51,801 nucleotides of DNA from Ministeria vibrans ATCC 50519. Taxonomy: Eukaryota; Protista; Filasterea. Below are positions 972 through 11,721 of this stretch, piece after piece; the first letter of the stretch is position 1; each line of letters starts with the position of its first letter. The notes beneath the pieces were generated by a model. That model was not told where the DNA came from and did no database searches. It saw nothing but the letters and a program-made list of their open reading frames with translations. The translations under genes were made by a program, and so were the position numbers. The DNA lies in assembly GCA_943704425.1 (NCBI GenBank), contig CALSCP010000031.1, forward strand, positions 1 to 51,801. The letters run 5' to 3'.

Positions 972-1858
972 GAAGTAGTTGTATTAAAAAAAACAAGAAA
1001 CTTTTGTTTAGTGCAAATGATTATAATGCTTGCCATTCTCTCAGTGAAAATTCGAAGATTCCACACAGCAGCCACTAGAATGGGAATAGCGTCACGTATG
1101 TTATCGTCCTGCGCACAGTCTTCAAACAAACCAGGAAGGTGCAACAGGCGCTGTACGACGTAGACCGATAAGAGTGTCAACACACTCATATCTCTTGACC
1201 ACGTTGCTTGCGTTTGGGCACGGACTCACTCCGCCACGGAGTGTCAGACAGCCGTCGAAGCGTGTTTGTGACTGTGTCGTCAATGATGTTGGCGTCTGAC
1301 ACAAATTGAACAGCGCATCGCCTGATCCTTCGCTTGTCTCGAATGTTGCCAATTTCTTTCACACAGTTGAAGGACTCAATCATAGGAGAAAGCCGGTCGT
1401 CCATAGACAATTCTGGCGTTACGGGTGGCATTTGTGTTTGGTTAAAATTGTGTTTTGTTAAATCTGTGTTTTATTGATTCTAACAATGACGTCACTTCTT
1501 CTTTTGTTTGCTCAGCTGTTGCACTCGCTCAGCTGGCTGAAGAACACCGTCTTAAATCGAAAACGCCGGAGGATTGGCCACACCTAAACCCAGAGGGCGA
1601 AGAGGGCGCCGAATAATGCCTACCATTTACCAATTAGAAGAAGAAGAATACAACCCGTATGTTTATGCCGACACAATTAAAACAGGAGTCAAAATCAAAG
1701 AAACAGATAAACTGAGATTGTCAACACCTGCCACAGGTGGACAAGTTTATTGGGTGTGGTTACAAGCGACGCATGGGGCGGCCATTGCGGACCTCTTCTA
1801 CTCGGCTTCCCTGAAAACCATTGACGGAGTAAGTGCTTTCCATTCCCAACACATTGTC
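972..1858. pseudogene. Fragmented spliced gene of unknown function, ending at the telomere repeat; part on + strand (1616-1828), part on - strand (~1355-1033)
   Basis: Minus exons ...TRFDGCLTLRGG|gtgagt..cag|RLLHLPGLFEDCAQDDNIRDAIPILVAAVWNLRIFTERM join in phase 0; the plus-strand ORF ...SLKTIDG ends at a gtaagt donor. Confidence 0.4.
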
Positions 1859-1876
1859 ATTGTGTCGTACTTCTTA

Positions 1877-4119
1877 TCAATCGTCGACGTCGCCTAGTAA
1901 CAAATCATATCTTCCTTTCGGCAGCGGCTTTTTTCCGACGTCTTTTCTTTCCCGCTTCGCCATGTCCTTAGCTTCTCTCTTTTTCGCCCTCTCTTCCCTC
2001 TTGTGAATCGGCCCACATACTGTACGGATGAATTTCCCAATGTCTTTCTCAGTCTCTCCTCGTGGGTAATCGTCGCCTTCTTTCTTCATCAGCTGCAACT
2101 CGTGGTGCAGGTGGACTCCACTACCAACACGAGCGTATCGCAGACCTTGACGACCCCATGGCCCCAGCAGGGATGCGTGCAGGTGCCCGAGCGAAAGGAC
2201 GACCGCGAGCCTACACAAAGACTACAAGATCAGAATCAACTTCATGGAGGGAGAAAGCGTACCACTGATCAACGCCCTTACGCAACGGTCCCGCGCTTCC
2301 ACGTTGAGGTGTGTTGGGTTCTGCACAGGGAGCGCACGACTTGTGAACAGCAATAATCAGGGCAGACACCATAAGCGCACTCATTGGCGGTTCAAAGTCG
2401 CTGGCGTGATGGGCGAGCCAGAGGAAGGCGAGGCCGGGGACGGCGGGGATCGTCGCCGGCACACAGGCGAACTCAGTGGCGCTGATACCACACACTTCAA
2501 GCATAAAGTCTTTGCGCATGGCCACGTCCTTCAGAACAATACTCTCCATGTCAGGGCCATCGCGTAGTTCGTGTCGTGCCGTGAATGTCGTGGCACATTT
2601 ATGGAACGTTTCAACCACGTGTTCCTCGTAGAGAATCCCATGAGCAGCCACGCGCAAAGGCGCCGTCGTTTCCCACGGAGAACAAAAACGGTCGTCCATA
2701 CAAATAAGCATCTCCAGACGGTGACGCTTGCGCGCATCAAACCGCAGCTGTCCAGACGCGTAATACTCTGCGTAAGACTGCGGAAAACTCAACTTGGCTT
2801 TGCAATATGCAACAACATCGCACATCTCCGGACTCGGTTCGTATAACATGCGCGACACGCCCAATGTCGGACACGACCATCCTTTCTCCTAAGAGACATG
2901 AATCGAATAAACTCACAAAACAAAACTTGTTCACCTGTTGGCGAACTTTGTCGGCAGCAGCCTCAAAGCTTGTCCAGGAATCCGATCGGGTGGTGTAATC
3001 GTTCCCAGCAACACAAGCAAACATGGGCATATCTTGCGGATGCAGTTTGAGGGCAGTAGCAAGTGTTCCCGCACTAAAGACACCGGACAATTAGTTCAGC
3101 GATGGTGTTGTGGTGAAATGCTGACGGGAAGAATGCAGAAGCGCAGCCAGTCTTCACGTTAAACTCACGGAACGGCACATAATCAACATCTGCAATGAGG
3201 TAATCGGAATCGTCCGCCAGCACGACCGCGTTGTGCTTTTGGGCCAAGGCGATGACCAGTGCGTCGCCTTCACCAACGGCACACTTGACGGTCACGCGAT
3301 CCTCGTCAGAGGGGAGCTCAAGCACGGCCTATGAGAGGAAACAGTGATTGTAGTATGAAATTAGTTGAAATTAGTTGTATGTGTTTCATCTCTCACGCAA
3401 AATTGCCACAGCCCGACAGTCCATACCTCAGTGGCTACAACTGACAACATTGGTGGCTTGTATATGGTTTTCCCCTCTTCGACAGCCTTCATCTTTTGCT
3501 TGTCCCTATCTTTGATCGTCGCGTCCTTCTCTTCTGGTGCTGCTCCGTCGAGGACGACAGTGACCGCTTCTGCGTGTTTCAATAGATCGAGGACAAATTG
3601 TCGCACTTTGTCGAAGTATAGCATCATGTTTCCGTGCGCTTTGGTGGTGAGTTCGCCGTCTGTTTTACATCTACAAAAGGAAACCAGTTTGAAAACGATT
3701 GTTCAAACGGATAGAAGCAAACCGCGATCAGAATCAACAAGCAGTCATCGGCTGTCATCGACGCCAATGCATTGATCACAGTGCAAGTTCCATGAATACT
3801 TTTGGGCATTTTCGTACGAGACACGACAAAAGAAATACGGTTCAATATACCAAAGTAGGATGTCTTTAGCCAAATGGCAGTCCTGAGCGCTCCCGGTGAA
3901 CGTGAAGCAAAAAAGGAGAAGACTTCTTAGGCAAACATCAAAGTACTTACAGGCACTCGAATACGGCGTGCTTCAGCCCACCGAAGTCAACAATAACATG
4001 TCGCTTGAGCACATCGCCTCTATCATATGCAAGTCAGCTACTGAGGAGGACTTCTCCTCTTTTTATTCTCACTTCTTGGAATACTGCAGCGCAAATTTCC
4101 CGAGCCCCTGGATCCCCAT
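1877..4119 (-). CDS. Asteroid/ASTE1-like XPG/FEN-family PIN nuclease, multi-exon, disrupted at ~3077-3154 as assembled
   Basis: Spliced MGIQGLGK..VIVDFGG..VVLDGAAPEEK..GEGDA..VLADDSDYLI..FACVAGNDY..QW..GVHLHHEL are XPG-N/I and asteroid-type motifs; all introns join in frame except the 3077-3154 junction. Confidence 0.75.
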
Positions 4120-4133
4120 TCTAGAATAAAAAC

Positions 4134-4441
4134 GCCACCCTCAGCCAACACACAGTCTACACAAGGACACCATACACTCATCACCCAAGCCCTGCACACA
4201 TACTATACATCCTGATTTGCAGGGTTAGCAGAGCGAGCATTTCGGTTCACAAAAAACCCTGAGCGGCTCTTACACGAAATTGCCACTCTTAGCCAACACA
4301 CAGCCTACAAAACCACACCAGATATCCAACACTCGATCCCTGCACCCATAATACATTCTATGTTTTGCAGGCGCTGGCGCGCAGGCAGGGTCTCAAAGAA
4401 GAAAAGAAAAAAGAAAAAAAAAGCGAGCTCTTACATGAAAT
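4134..4441 (+). repeat. Degenerate tandem duplication (~150-bp unit x2) upstream of the asteroid-like gene
   Basis: Shared blocks agccaacacacag, ccctgcac, tttgcagg and gctcttaca.gaaat at 4134-4281 and 4282-4441. Confidence 0.7.
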
Positions 4442-4684
4442 CACCCTTCATTAACACGCTAAAACACATACATGCCCAACGTTGTGCGTGAGAGAAACGC
4501 CCCCATTTGCACGGGTTGGCAGAGTTTCGAGACAGTCATTTCAACGCAACAGACACCACGAATACCACACACACTCAACTGTACAACCCATACACGTACT
4601 GTTCGACTTTGTGGTTTCTCTGAAGAAGGCACACGGAGAACTTCGAATAAATCGAACGTGAATGACATCTGATTAAAAGTAGTT

Positions 4685-5553
4685 TCATTTTGGACAGCAA
4701 ATATGGGACAGGCTTAGCAATATTTGAAAACCGAGAGTTACGTACACCGCGACTTGAATTTTGCGTCCTTGATCGTCGTCAATGGGCGTGACAAAATTAG
4801 CTAGAACCAGATAGACAACGTCAACAAATATTGACGAAGCACTAAAACACTTCAAGAAGTCAGTGGTTGTAACAACCACGTCCTTGTTGTAGAATGGAAG
4901 ATGCTGCAGTTTCGTTAAAGGCAACGGTCGAGATTTTTCTCCATAGTAGTGGAGCTTGGCGACCTCCACAATTACAGTGGAGATTAAGAGACAAACGAAT
5001 GGAACCCAATGATAGGGGTGATCATACACTTGTATCACTTTCAAAGCCTTGATTATCACGGAAGCATAAATCAAGAATGGCGACATGACGGTATCAATGA
5101 TTTGATATAAGGAAATGCGCATGTCGTAGTTGCGGACGGTGAAGCCATAGCATAAACCGAGAACTGTCATAGCCTCAATCGCAGCAAACGGTGGTATGCA
5201 AGTAACGTCTATAGATATGACGTATGCAATGGGGTACGCATTACAGACCATGAGACATGCGATACTGGGGTAAACTCCATATCCTGAACGGCGATGAAAA
5301 TTGAAAATACAGAAGAGATGACCCCAAATCCCATGACCATCCAAAGGAACACAGGGCCTTGCAGAGGACCCAATGTATCAATGGAGTGCTTATCATAAAC
5401 AAAAACATAAAACCAAATAGAGATTCCAAAGGCAACTCTGAAGGCATGTAACAAACTCAGTGTGCCTTTTCCCTCATGCTTTAAGTCTCTCATGAGCCAT
5501 ACAACTGGTGCTGGAATTGAAGGTTTTTGGCAGCAAAAGCACGCCATAAACAA
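4685..5553 (-). pseudogene. Multi-pass membrane protein of unknown family, apparent frameshift near 5210-5290
   Basis: Two overlapping hydrophobic ORFs (5209-5553 and 4685-5344) in different frames with several TM-like segments; I found no plausible in-phase intron joining them. Confidence 0.45.
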
Positions 5554-5921
5554 TACGATGACCCAAGGTAAGAAATGCCGTTTGATCCAAATGATCTATG
5601 ATAATGTCCGCATTTTAACAATTTCGCACTCCCGAATTCCCAGGTCAGAGCCCTGAGCCCTCAGGGAAAGAGAGCTGTAGAGTTGTGGAAGCTGGTAAAT
5701 TGTTGTGTTCTTTTTTCGAGGGTGCATTTGGCAAGTTGTCTAGTTTAATCCACACTAATTTGGTGTTTGGCTTGTGTAGGTTAGTCCTGTTAGTGGGGCT
5801 TGATGTGTCTGAGATCAAAATTGATATAATCAGGCAAAGTGAGTGAGTGAGTAAGTCACACATAATTTTTTTTTACTTCCTTCATATACTCTTTGAATGA
5901 GTGTCTTTGGTAAGTGGAAAG

Positions 5922-7755
5922 TCAGTCATATCGGATGACTGTGAAGTCAATCAGCACGTGCTCATCGGTGACCGGATTCTTGCAGACATTCGCGGGCGGG
6001 ACATCTGGGTGTTTGAAGCCCTTGATTTCGGCGGCCTTGGCGAGCACTGCGAGGACACTTTCATTCACTCCCTCTTCTGGAGCAGGCATCAGCACTGGCA
6101 TCAGCACGCCGAAGCGCTGCAAGCCAAATTTGCGCGCATGCACACGACCGCCTGTGAGATGGCCGTTGACTCGATTCCAGACTTTTGCCTCGGCCTCGGC
6201 ACAGTCTTGACAAATCGTGCCTCGGGGGTCGGCGTCAGAACCAAGGGGGCGCATCAGCTTGATCGCAAAGAGACTATACAGGTCGGCGGCAAATGCAAGA
6301 AACACCGTGCCATGGGCGCCCATCTTGATGCGGTGCAGAATCACAATGGGCCCATCGTACTGCTCATCAGGCACTTGCAGATGCAACTTGGTGGGATCGA
6401 TGTTCACGTCTCGCCACAAGTCGCTGCCGTCCTCTGTCTCTCCCAGAACCAACTTGGTCCCTGCGAGCGGCATGCAATCAACAGGGGCCATGACCATCTT
6501 TCGCATAAGCGTGGCGAGCTGAAGTCGCAGAGGGCGGTCGACAATCGAGCCCTGTGCGGCCTCAATTGGCGCCGAGGCGTGCAGTGTGTGTTGGCTGATT
6601 GGTAGGTCCTTTTCAGCAGGTAGCGTGGTTGCCAACTCGTAAGGCGTCGTAGTGAGTGGCTGTGTCGCCGCTTGCGCCACGACCATTTGCCACGTCCCCA
6701 TGCCGGCAGGGCGGGGTTGACTTGTGACCTCCAACGCAATTGCAGTCACCTCGTCAAGGCTGTCCGCTTCAAGCACACGCTGCGCCCAAGTTGTTCCCGG
6801 GCGACTCACTCCAACAATGCGCCAACCAAGGTACGTCGACACCAGTCCAAGAGCCCAGCCCAGCCCTTCAAGGTGCCTACACAAACAAAAAAATTATTAT
6901 GAATCATCGTGTCCCGCACAAAGGCATTTGTGTCGGCATACAGCAGCGCGAGAAGGTACGCCATAATTTGGCCAAGAACCACCTCGTCCTCCAGAGCAGC
7001 CGTTGCGTTTGGACAGGGAACCTTCACTTCCACAACGCCGACGCGACATTTTTGAGGCATCTCGATAAACACTCCGTCCCGTCGCAATCTTGCAGTCAAG
7101 TAGGTCTCTGGGTGGATCTCTGCCTTAGCTTTCAGAGAAGCAGCGATAATGGCGTCTTCCAGTGTTCGGCAGACAAGCCGCGCAATGGAGGTTTCTGTTG
7201 ACCATCCCTTCATTTGTTTTTAGCCATTTAGGTCAGGAGTTCTCCCTGAAGCGGAATTCAGGAATAACTTACAGTAGGCGTCTTTGCCAGACTCGAGATG
7301 CCGTCTGGGAAGCATTCACTCGGGAACGCTTTGGGGAGAATGTCGTTCGCTTTGACAGGTTTGTAATTGCCTTTATGATACGCTGACCTTGTAGATGACC
7401 TCTCGGCAAGACGTGTGAGTTTTGTAGAGATGGTCAAACTCGAGTTGCGCGCCGACGAGGAGAGGCAACGTGCCATGGAGGCAATGCAACGCGCCATGGA
7501 GGAAAAGCAACGCGCCGACAAGATACAGGCGCTGATAGAAGGTTGTTTTTCTTTTCTTTTGCAACAATCACGAATACTGACAAGTGAAATTTAGTCGGAG
7601 ACAAAACAACAATATTGGGTCAAGACGCGTTGTGTTTTGTCTTTTGGTCGCGAACAACTCTTACTCTGCTTCATTTCTTCTGATGCATTGGGCCACTCCG
7701 CGTCTACATCTTTGCGAATCTCCTGCTCATCTCGACGCCTCTTTTTGCTTTCCAT
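5922..7755 (-). CDS. Crinkler-like coiled-coil + PD-(D/E)xK REase + protein-kinase-like protein; exon 2 and part of exon 3 inverted (7380-7630) as assembled
   Basis: WSTETSI..RRDG..VGVVEVKVP..LGQIMAYL..GLVSTY.GWR (REase-like), then MGAHGTVF..AIK..HPDVPPANV..VLIDF (kinase G-loop, VAIK, HxD..N, DF). Exon 1 MESKKRRR... at 7755-7665. Confidence 0.7.
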
Positions 7756-7997
7756 ATTGATGTACTCACAGAGTTTTGAAAAGACACTGAAAATTCAAAA
7801 AAGACAGAAGAAGAAGCAAAAAAAAGTCATGCAATCGGGCTCGCACATAGGCAATGCAATGAGAAGCATGCAACGTTCGTTATCTCACCTGAAGAGAATG
7901 GAGCGAAGAAAAAAGTACAAAGTGGAATTCTGGATTCTGGAATCGGTTGATTATTTTACTCATACTTTCTTTCTTGTCATACGTTCTGACGACTGCC

Positions 7998-10360
7998 ATG
8001 TCTACTCTTACGGACATGCTTACTCGCGACATCGCGGACATTGATCCGACGACGGAGGCTGGTGCCGAGGAGAACGAACCGTCGCGAGGCGAGAAGCGGC
8101 GTCATTCGAATCCTGAATCGGATCCCGCCACTTCCGGCCTGTGTGTAGAGTGCGAGGACCAACCGGCGGCCGTCGTATGTCGCGAGTGTGACGACACTCT
8201 CTGTGACGTGTGTTTTCATGCGCTGCACCGACGAGGGAAGCGTCAGAGACACGAGGTGAATCGAATCACGTCGGCACCCGACGCAACGGTTGTTGCCGCT
8301 GCACAGACTGACGCTGTGGTCGTGCCGACTGCCCCTGCGGCTGGTGATGCGACCTCACCTTTGGCTATGGACACCGGCCACGAGGCGCGTGCGTCGAGCG
8401 ACCTCGATCTGAGCAGCGATGACGATGCGCATGCCGACGACGACGATGCTCGACGACCCGTTGCGATCGAATCGATTTCGACCGACGTTGGACGAGCCGG
8501 ACAGCCCCTGACCGTCTTTGAACGCGCAAAGTACATTCCCCTGCGCCTGGACATGTCGGAGCGCAAGGCGTTGCGGCTGCTCGAGGCGGCACTGAATGTG
8601 TCCGAGTACACTGATCACGTCGATGTGTACTGCTACGGCTCGAAAATGAAGCGCATCCAAACGCAACTGTTGGATATGTGTGCTATCATGAGCGGTCTCA
8701 TGGTGGCTTCAGACTACAAGGCTGGCCAGGAACTCATTTCTACTCGTGAGTTCCAAGAAAATGAGATTTTCTTTCAGGTATGTTTACAGGGCTACAATTA
8801 TCAATCCTCATTTTTCCCCTCCTCCTCTTCTCTTTTTCTCCTGATCAGGAATTCTTTGAAGTGGGACGACGTCACAAAATCTTGAATCCTGAGAAAATGA
8901 GAACAGGTTAGTGATAGGCGGGAATTGGAAGGAATCACCGCAAACTGAGATGAATGAACAATACAAATTAATTATTATGTTAATCTTTTTAGAGTACGGG
9001 AAGCTGGTGCACCTTCTGATGGACAGTGTGTCAGCTGATGTGCGTCAAATGTTGGAGTTCTCGTGCGTGAAGCCCGTTTTGACTGTGCATGCGCAGTTGC
9101 AGTCGCTGGGGGCACTAGCGATGCTTCGTGAGCCCGACATTGAGACGGCTACAATGGACATTCTGCCGGGGAACAAGGACCGTCCGACCATTGAGAGCGA
9201 GATCAAGGCCAAGGAGCGCGCCATTGAGCGGCTCGCGCGTAAGTACGCCCGTGCAAACTGTTCCAAGGACCAAGTGAGGTACGACTTGATATCACCCTTT
9301 GTGTGTTTGTTTTTGCGTCGCCTGAAGTGTCACCTGTGCTTGCAGACACTGCCTGTACAGCATTGCGGACAACAACTCCTACCTCAGCGGAAATCGCCTT
9401 CCAGTGGATCGCATGATTGGCTATCTTGAGCACTACTTCGACCCTGAGACGGTTGCGATTGAGCGACGCGCGGACGGAGCGGAGACGGAATACTCATTGG
9501 CGATTGCGGCGGGACGACGAGGCGCGCGTCTTTCCCACTCGCACCGTCAGCAGTTCCACTACGTGCGCCAAACCCTCTTGCTCTGGCGCAACGTGCTTCA
9601 TGACATGTACCGCCTGTGGCATTTGGCTGGTACTACACTGCTGTGGCTCAGCTCGCATCATTCATTCACCTCTTGCTTGCTCGTCCATAGAAAACGACCT
9701 GCTTGACGAGCATAATCACTACCGCCTGTGCAACACCGGTCAAGGTCTCAACCGCGTGCAGTCTGCCCCGCGCATCTCCCGTGCCATGCACTCGCTTCTC
9801 CACGAGACCCAGCGCGTATGCCTGTCCCAACCCCACAGTATAATCATATTATTATTTTATTCAAATTGTCTTTTGTCCGTAGACGGTGGACCACTGGGTG
9901 GGCTCGAGTGTGATTCATTTAGGCGATCACAATGTTCCGAATGCGTTGATGTTCATTGACAAGTACACGCAGATCCCGCGCATTCTCTCTCCACTCGTGC
10001 TCGTCCTCGAACACATCCCCCGTCTCGAGGGTCCCGAGTTCAACCGTGGCAATTCCGCCATGCGTGACCTTGTCGCCACCTTTGGGGTATACTGACTCAC
10101 GATTGCTCTCACGATGAAAATGTGTTGATTGTTGTGCACTTTGACAGGGATGCGAGAAGCTGCGACGTACGATTCTCGTGGACTTCTTCCGACATGCTTT
10201 TGACGGGAGTGGCGCCAGCAACTTCTTTGATGCAGGCTCGTGCATCGACGGGCGTCTCACCAGTGCTTGGAACTGGTGCTCGTCTATTGAGAAGAAACCC
10301 TACTTTCCCGTCTTCCTTGTGTGTGGCTTCACCAGCTTCGACGGTGACTGGCAGCGATGA
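7998..10360 (+). CDS. UPF0652/DUF2009 protein with N-terminal B-box-like zinc finger (multi-exon)
   Basis: CVECEDQPA..CRECDD.LC.VCF..LHRRGKR..H; ERAKYIPLRL..ERK.LRLLEAALNVSEYTD; HLGDHNVPNALMFIDKY; DFFRHAFDGSG..NFFDAGSCIDGRLTSAWNWCS. Confidence 0.85.
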
Positions 10361-10452
10361 ACTTTTATTTTACAATAAAAATAATTATACTGACAATAAT
10401 AATAATTATTAAGAACGACGATGATGTTTTTGATGATGTATGCGTCTGCTCA

Positions 10453-11721
10453 TCATATGTCGGCAGGCACCGGCCAAAGATGGAGCTGGTGGTCGTAGAA
10501 GCTACAGGTGGCAATGCGATGAGGCGCGTGTGGGTGCCAGTCTGCGCCGTACGCAATGCTCCCGTGCGCACTGTACTCGTGGACCACGCGAGCCTCAGTG
10601 CCTACGCGCAGCAAACGCACACCTGCGTACATGCATGGCGCAACCAGCAGCGTAGGGTCTGTGGGGTGCCACTGTCCAGATTGCTCTCTCAAGTCAGAAA
10701 ACATCCATAGTTGTAAAAGCTCTTACCTTGAGACGCCATACGCCACCTCCGACAGAGACAGAATCGATCGGCCGTCGCATATTTCGACCGTCCCACACCT
10801 TGATGGTGTCATCGTAGCTGCACGCGATTTGATGTCAAAATTCAAAACGACGGCTGTTTGGTATACCTGCCAGTCACCAAAAGGTGCTCGACTAGCGGAC
10901 TGGACTGGACACTGCACACGCCCATTGAGTGCCTGTGATAGCATAAAAGTAATGAACGCTGAGCTTATTGCTTGTGGGAGGGGGGAGGGGGGCACGTACG
11001 CTTTGCTTGTGAATGTGGCCACGGAAGGGTTCTGGCGAGTGTCCCAACCGCGCAGACGGCAGTCGTCGCCTCCCGAGTAGACCAGGTGGGGCTGCCAACA
11101 ATCGTACGCTGCAATCCACGCCTCAAATGAATGCGCATTCCAAGTCTGTGTTACACGCAGTTCACCGCCCGGTGCATCCGCTGCCACGAGTGAAATGTCT
11201 CCCAGCGAATCGCTCACGACAATCTCTGGTGAGACGTCTTGTGCATTGCGCCGAGTGTTCCATTCCAGCGACAGTCTCAAGGCTTCTTTCTCGTCCTGCT
11301 CTCGCCAGCCCGTCGCATCGTTGCATACGCACGTGCCGACCGGCAGCCCATCCAGGCCTTTGTCGAATCTAAAGGTCGACAGGCAGCCCACGGCATCGGC
11401 CAGTGCGAGCAGCGGACCATTCCCGTGGCGACTCCACTTCATGTCGAGGATTGCTGCCGTGTCCTGTCGCCACACCTCACACACCCTGTCCTCGCCGTCG
11501 TCTCCCGCCTCATTCTCCACCTTGTACAGCAAGAGACGCCCAACACGCTCCTTGGCGCCTGTCTGTGTCTCCTCCTACTCCCCTTGATGCTTTAGTATAT
11601 TTCTGCCTTTTTTTTTTTTCGACCGAACCTCTGTGAGTTGGTACGTGCCGCACGCAAGCCAAGAGCCATCGGGACTCCACTCTGTCGAGTCTGCACTGTA
11701 CTCGGTGTCCACGACGACCAT
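10453..11721 (-). CDS. DPH7: Diphthine methylesterase (WD40, DPH7/WDR85)
   Basis: DTEYSADSTEW..LACGTYQL; AILDMKW; AHSFEAWIAAYD..LVYSGGDD; HGSIAYGADW; ATCSFYD. Confidence 0.9.

Follow-up and report, generated by a model that had tools for sequence, protein, structure and literature searches.

In a coiled-coil/nuclease/kinase gene, a 200-nt segment of the 5' part was found to be reversed in place, at positions 7422-7621 of a 51,801-nt stretch of DNA from the filasterean Ministeria vibrans ATCC 50519. This stretch, referred to here as the window, forms the beginning of contig CALSCP010000031.1 (C31) of assembly GCA_943704425.1, which comprises 29.7 Mb in 2860 contigs. The gene occupies positions 5922-7755 on the minus strand. 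Its reading frame is intact when the segment stands in the opposite orientation, the breakpoints are exact, and the two orientations occur in independent assemblies. The reversal probably goes back to a single historical micro-inversion that was not programmed. An earlier note on this DNA had described three reversed segments and had proposed a system for scrambling or switching genes; only one of the three proved to be an inversion.

The main sequence for comparison was L024, a metagenome contig of 5763 nt from the European Nucleotide Archive (ENA; assembly ERZ23497376, sample SAMN09406036). The 316-aa last exon of the gene, used in a word search, led to it via one protein cluster of ENA metagenome assemblies. 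A second member of the same cluster is carried by L030, a contig of ERZ23497041 (sample SAMN09406010), and both samples belong to one study. Within the assembly of the window, contig C1645 (L011; 6809 nt) bears a paralogous 5' module of the gene. Window positions 5562-7421 aligned with L024 in reverse orientation at 98.6% identity, positions 7622-7721 in reverse at 100%, and positions 7667-10915 in reverse at 99.6%. Positions 7420-7623 aligned forward at 96% identity. At the base level the 200 nt are reversed in place with zero bases gained or lost, and the flanks align without insertions or deletions (indels) at the junctions. The breakpoints lie at 7421/7422 and 7621/7622, with an ambiguity of 2 nt caused by the sequence TT...AA, and the segment measures 204 nt if TT/AA is counted. 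The earlier note had recognized this inversion, but the boundaries that it gave (7380-7630) were off by 42 and 9 nt. No other inversion was present within the approximately 9.3 kb of the window that could be compared with independent contigs.

In the orientation of L024 the gene consists of five exons, which are joined in frame by four GT..AG introns of 49, 53, 65 and 65 nt. Splicing was checked on L024 by intron phases and by translation of each exon, and the exons were searched separately. Exon 1 (7665-7755, minus strand, 91 nt, MESKKRRRDEQ...EEMKQ) ends in phase 1 and is not inverted. It is followed on the same strand by the first 43 nt of intron 1 (7622-7664), which begin with the donor GTAAGA and have lost their 3' splice site to the inversion. 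The last 6 nt of this intron, the acceptor TTGTAG, are found flipped on the plus strand at 7422-7427, where they precede exon 2. Exon 2 (7428-7541) also lies on the plus strand, that is, on the wrong one. It encodes coiled-coil heptads (MVKLELRADEERQRAMEAM...IE) in 21-nt repeats and is followed by the flipped intron 2 (7542-7594, plus strand, 53 nt, GT..AG) and by the first 27 nt of exon 3 (7595-7621, plus strand), with which the segment ends. The remainder of exon 3 (7273-7421, …LTRLAERSSTRSAYHKGNYKP…TPT) is not inverted and stands on the minus strand, as do exon 4 (6942-7207), exon 5 (5922-6876, stop codon included) and the two 65-nt introns around exon 4 (7208-7272 and 6877-6941). Because the intron-1 acceptor is lost and exon 2 is antisense, a full-length protein could presumably not be made from the window copy, which would amount to loss of function. 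An alternative N-terminus read from the antisense strand of the flipped exon was considered and rejected, as this frame contains stops in L030.

Motifs could be read from the sequence in two of the exons. Exon 4 would encode the core of a PD-(D/E)xK-like nuclease (D…EVK, in …DGVFIEMPQKCRVGVVEVKV…), and exon 5 a kinase-like domain (HxDxxxxN…DF, in …HPDVPPANV…LIDF…). Exon 2 varies in its count of 21-nt heptad units (window 7448-7520): the window and L024 have three each, L030 has more (1-207) and C1645 has fewer, and the changes between haplotypes are always in frame. No window exon of the gene matched a Pfam family, and a search of the PDB by sequence gave no match. A word search with the coiled-coil open reading frame (ORF) returned only the query itself. 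The one distant paralog (30% identity) gave kinase matches in Pfam below the threshold, and the look-alikes suggested by a protein language model were kinase clusters, one of which carries SPOK2_N. An AlphaFold model of the kinase-like exon, built on an alignment of four sequences, reached a predicted local distance difference test score (pLDDT) of 30 and was not used.

The order of coiled coil, PD-(D/E)xK-type motif and kinase-like domain, here recognized by motifs, is the same as in the Spok proteins of Podospora meiotic drive and in Crinkler-type effectors. Spok proteins have an N-terminal coiled coil encoded by a repeat of variable length, a PD-(D/E)xK-type nuclease and a kinase-like domain (PMC6660238). 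The N-terminal coiled coil with its variable-length repeat is thus a common feature. Unlike the Spok genes, the gene described here matches Pfam in none of its exons and belongs to a protist and not to a fungus. The architecture hints at a likeness to Spok/Crinkler-type proteins.

The 5' module on C1645 comprises the promoter, exon 1, intron 1 and the start of exon 2. It is 89% identical to that of the window gene, and copies of it sit at both ends of the contig. Since this paralogous module is oriented as in L024, the orientation of L024 is, judged from the paralog, the ancestral one. L030 is collinear with window positions 5562-7575 and spans the junction at 7421/7422, and it therefore has the flipped form. 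The flipped form is thus present in two independent assemblies (the window and L030) and the unflipped form in a third (L024). On a contig of the Joint Genome Institute (JGI) from a third sample, for which gene-call positions but no DNA were available, a gene call stops 236 nt ahead of the nuclease ORF, at precisely the distance seen in L024. This geometry indirectly fits the unflipped form. An exact 20-mer scan of the JGI metagenomes for further copies of the breakpoint flank yielded only one unrelated contig. In nature the two forms occur side by side, be it as alleles or as subtelomeric copies that are nearly identical.

The earlier note had asked that chimeras from multiple displacement amplification (MDA) be excluded, and the possibility was weighed that such a chimera, or faulty assembly of one of the data sets, had produced the reversal. 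Two of the contigs could arouse suspicion. L024 is a scaffold in which a 100-N gap (L024 3250-3349), about 100 nt from one breakpoint, is flanked by a duplicated overlap of 55 nt corresponding to window 7667-7721, and C1645 has suspicious terminal inverted repeats of 862 nt. The gap in L024 marks a place within the repeated 5' module at which the assembly graph is broken. In either form the two junctions lie within continuous sequence, the flanking inverted repeats are too short to confuse a de Bruijn assembler, and the flipped junction recurs in two assemblies with differing haplotypes, of which L030 is an independent contig from another sample. In addition, the unflipped form restores the five-exon frame and matches the paralog, neither of which would be expected of a random chimera. 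For these reasons an artefact is very unlikely. The terminal inverted repeats of C1645 are 99-100% identical, and each ends in the 5' module of the nuclease-kinase paralog. The body of the paralog to which this module belongs is absent from the assembly. Contig C775 likewise ends within exon 1 of a paralogous 5' module.

Over 1.86 kb of flanking sequence the window and L030 differ by 15 substitutions, the window and L024 by 22, and L030 and L024 by 28. Three sites of the segment outside the heptad repeats differ between the window and L024, and L030 has the base of the window at all three. L030 also has private features, namely the extra heptad units, ten substitutions and a 2-nt deletion in the flank. 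Orientation tracks haplotype in the three available sequences, and the haplotypes would fit a single, old origin of the flip. Across all lineages the ratio of non-synonymous to synonymous changes was 10:4, which is close to neutral.

The two forms might be copies created by segmental duplication rather than alleles, with one copy missing from the fragmented assembly of 2860 contigs. The locus is subtelomeric, parts of it (a 135-aa gene family and the 5' module) are duplicated at other chromosome ends, and the divergence of 0.4-1.5% would be compatible with such copies. Only one copy of the gene body was found in the assembly, however, and this reading is improbable. It would alter the population-genetic description and not the nature of the event.

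The event itself can be pictured as follows. In an ancestor of the window haplotype, 200 bp in the 5' part of the gene would have been reversed in place, once and without any program. Exon 2 and intron 2 were flipped whole, together with the final 6 nt of intron 1 and 27 nt of exon 3, so that the gene lost its intron-1 acceptor and exon 2 came to lie on the antisense strand. The cause would have been either template switching during replication, to the opposite strand and then back, or end joining after two breaks. A two-break rejoining would yield the same product, and the mechanism is read from the product only. Local template switching had been one of the explanations offered in the earlier note, and it, like end joining, fits best with the exact flip, the microhomology of 2 bp and the orientation that follows haplotype. 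The four-point template-switch model includes a case in which a fragment is inverted and nothing else is changed (Löytynoja & Goldman 2017, PMC5453318).

The sequences at the breakpoints were compared with random expectation. Microhomology is limited to TT/AA. Between the breakpoint regions of the unflipped allele the best inverted repeat is 7 nt long, and 30% of random pairs have an equally good one. Both breakpoints also have short direct repeats nearby, AGACAAAACA and ACRCGTCTT; these are marginal, as 4.3% of random pairs do equally well, and they would favour deletion and not inversion. Hairpins at the junctions occur in the flipped form only, with a fold z-score of -2.7 (7592-7652) vs. 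+0.1 and +0.8 in the ancestral arrangement.

Several observations weigh against a single non-programmed inversion. The 2 bp of microhomology barely exceed chance (about 1 in 16), and a base-exact flip of 200 bp is longer than the short events treated in PMC5453318. Only three haplotypes are available, so that a single origin is not provable. Exons 4 and 5 have stayed open in both flipped haplotypes, and none of the five indel events among the three haplotypes lies in coding sequence, which is unexpected in a gene that has long been dead.

The open gene body in flipped haplotypes would also suit a programmed and reversible flip of an exon cassette, a eukaryotic counterpart of invertons by which a nuclease-kinase gene with potential toxicity would be toggled. 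Two samples from a single study show that either orientation exists in nature, and the exact flip takes along a complete exon with its splice signals. The architecture resembles that of the toxin-antidote Spok proteins, and contigs with the paralogous 5' module stop in or just before the module. These contig ends are, however, explained by the 21-nt tandem repeats and by the repetition of the module. The antisense frame of the flipped exon lacks conservation, as it has stops in L030, and the two orientations were seen only in different assemblies, following haplotype in each of the three sequences. The flanks of the segment in the unflipped allele lack inverted repeats above chance level. A Pfam scan restricted to ten ORFs between 1186 and 7213 detected no recombinase domain; the only matches were weak ones to PIN/XPG families in the neighbouring nuclease. 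Such a programmed cassette is highly improbable. We would give equally little credence to a reversible exon flip that works without a recombinase, or with a novel one, to switch a toxin-antidote-type gene like Spok. If true, a reversible exon flip would constitute a eukaryotic phase-variation switch that needs no long inverted repeats, in a unicellular relative of animals. Variation of orientation within clones would make the locus much more interesting.

The case for a switching system had rested on a cluster of inversions in three genes. Three minus-strand genes occupy 1-7.8 kb of the window: a decayed copy of a small 135-aa family, a PIN/XPG-like nuclease and, after a membrane-protein-like ORF, the coiled-coil/nuclease/kinase gene. 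Reversed segments had been assigned to all three, and the two assignments other than that in the nuclease-kinase gene failed. The segment at 3077-3154 belongs to the PIN/XPG-like (Asteroid-like) nuclease gene, which extends from about 1877 to 3850 on the minus strand and gave only weak Pfam matches below the threshold. Read on the minus strand, the exon continues for 29 nt from 3154 to 3126 (…KTGCASAFFP; …REFNVKTGCASAFFP). It is followed by a phase-2 intron of 52 nt (3125 to 3074, GTCAGC…TTTAG), after which the next exon starts with AGTLATALKLHPQDMPMFACVAGNDY. In the paralog on contig C1345 the exon ends in …TANYFFP, the intron reads GTAAGC…TTGCAG and the next exon begins with ARYLAKKWHVSQSLMPFIACALGNDF, and the intron has the identical codon position and phase. 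A Logan contig from SRR23272272, used as an independent comparison for this gene, is 95% identical and collinear over window 2027-3624; its differences within the intron are a 1-nt indel and clustered substitutions, and its donor is GTAAGC. By gene structure and these comparisons, 3077-3154 is not inverted and consists of a normal intron and a forward-reading exon.

Other readings of the same segment were tried. The introns GTGAAG..TTTAG and GTGAGT..GTCAG fail on reading phase. When reversed, 3077-3154 gives one open frame, but this joins neither of the flanking frames and has no similarity to the paralog. The donor at 3120-3125 (minus strand) is GTCAGC in the window and GTAAGC in both the Logan contig and the C1345 paralog. 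Because of this difference the window allele of the intron may be spliced less well.

The segment at 1406-1858 was explained by a decayed member of the 135-aa gene family beside an orphan ORF. Window positions 986-1479 are collinear, in one piece and across the proposed breakpoint at 1406, with contig C2235 of the same assembly. The family member on C2235 (3372-3779) is an intact, complete ORF of 135 aa, and its start aligns with window position 1431. The window copy (1016-1431, minus strand, start codon at 1431) is collinear with the copies on C2235 and C1894 and carries two frameshifts. The C1894 copy (1-540) differs again, and the family lies near chromosome ends. The window copy is essentially full length and was therefore not cut off by the telomere repeats. 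On this alignment an inversion at 1406-1858 is not supported, and the decayed gene needs no partner. The ORF at 1616-1828 (plus strand, 71 aa) is an orphan that is not evidently part of a neighbouring gene; no paralog of it was found, and HMMER yielded only repeat and composition matches that BLASTP did not support. Directly upstream of the 135-aa gene on C2235 lies another ORF (3058-3330) with the motif …GCWCKPGPCHGDVLVDLF…, which may resemble DUF4326.

The first part of C31 is subtelomeric in character because it has (CCCTAA)n blocks at 659-677 and 941-971, and because a copy of 986-1479 lies about 3.3 kb into C2235, a contig that starts with 19 telomere repeats. In positions 1-677 a minus-strand frame is open across all 658 nt, runs off the start of the contig and contains an RNase H-like motif (VKAHV…NERADGIAR). 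Because this frame adjoins (CCCTAA)3, the sequence suggests a retroelement in or beside the telomere repeats. An A/C-rich insert of 263 nt (678-940) separates the two blocks of telomere repeats. A dispersed repeat at about 4230-4650 recurs on other contigs in 15 or more partial copies, which are 67-88% identical, and it has an internal direct repeat of 95 nt (4129-4223 and 4277-4371). An ORF resembling a membrane protein (4685-5600, minus strand) is followed by the nuclease-kinase gene.

The short inverted repeats said to delimit the three segments (ACGC, AAGAC and GACAAT) are present where the earlier note had placed them. ACGC does not lie at the breakpoints of the inversion. Random segments of the same size, with a freedom of +/-6 nt, had such a pair in 39% (ACGC), 14% (AAGAC) and 3.6% (GACAAT) of cases; the pairs are common by chance because the boundaries were free to place. 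Alignment with paralogs decided the two weaker cases: C1345 shares the intron and C2235 is collinear, so neither is inverted. As only one of three events is an inversion, neither a cluster of micro-inversions confined to the subtelomere nor a scrambling or switching system is supported. A single segment remains; the inverted repeats around it do not exceed chance, and a recombinase was not found nearby. The gene, moreover, has one distant paralog only, and there is therefore no family of flipped genes.

The proposed system thus disappears, since two of its three pillars were misread gene structure. What is left standing is a natural, base-exact micro-inversion, recovered from the environment in both states, that flips an exon and a splice site in a fast-evolving subtelomeric gene. 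It offers a clean test case for template switching versus end joining in a protist. It is also a naturally occurring null or variant allele and could serve to find out what this Spok/Crinkler-like gene does.

The inversion resembles several known systems in part. In bacterial invertons and shufflons a segment likewise occurs in either orientation, and the gene is expressible in one of the two. Those systems depend on site-specific invertases acting on inverted repeats, whereas here neither above-chance repeats nor a nearby recombinase was found, and the gene is a spliced eukaryotic one. The scrambled genes of ciliates, with their pointer repeats, also have gene segments inverted relative to their neighbours. 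In M. vibrans a single segment is concerned, its 2-bp 'pointer' is inverted and not direct, and the unscrambled form is ordinary genomic DNA in another sample. Chimeras formed by MDA share the inverted junction with very short complementary bases, but here the two junctions are reciprocal, no bases were deleted, and an independent assembly of another sample has the same junction. Like micro-inversions attributed to template switching, including fork stalling and template switching and microhomology-mediated break-induced replication (FoSTeS/MMBIR), the segment is replaced in place by its own reverse complement without net gain or loss and with 2 bp of microhomology, and the derived allele has acquired new hairpin-forming junctions. 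Template switching or end joining would be the mechanism to which this product points.

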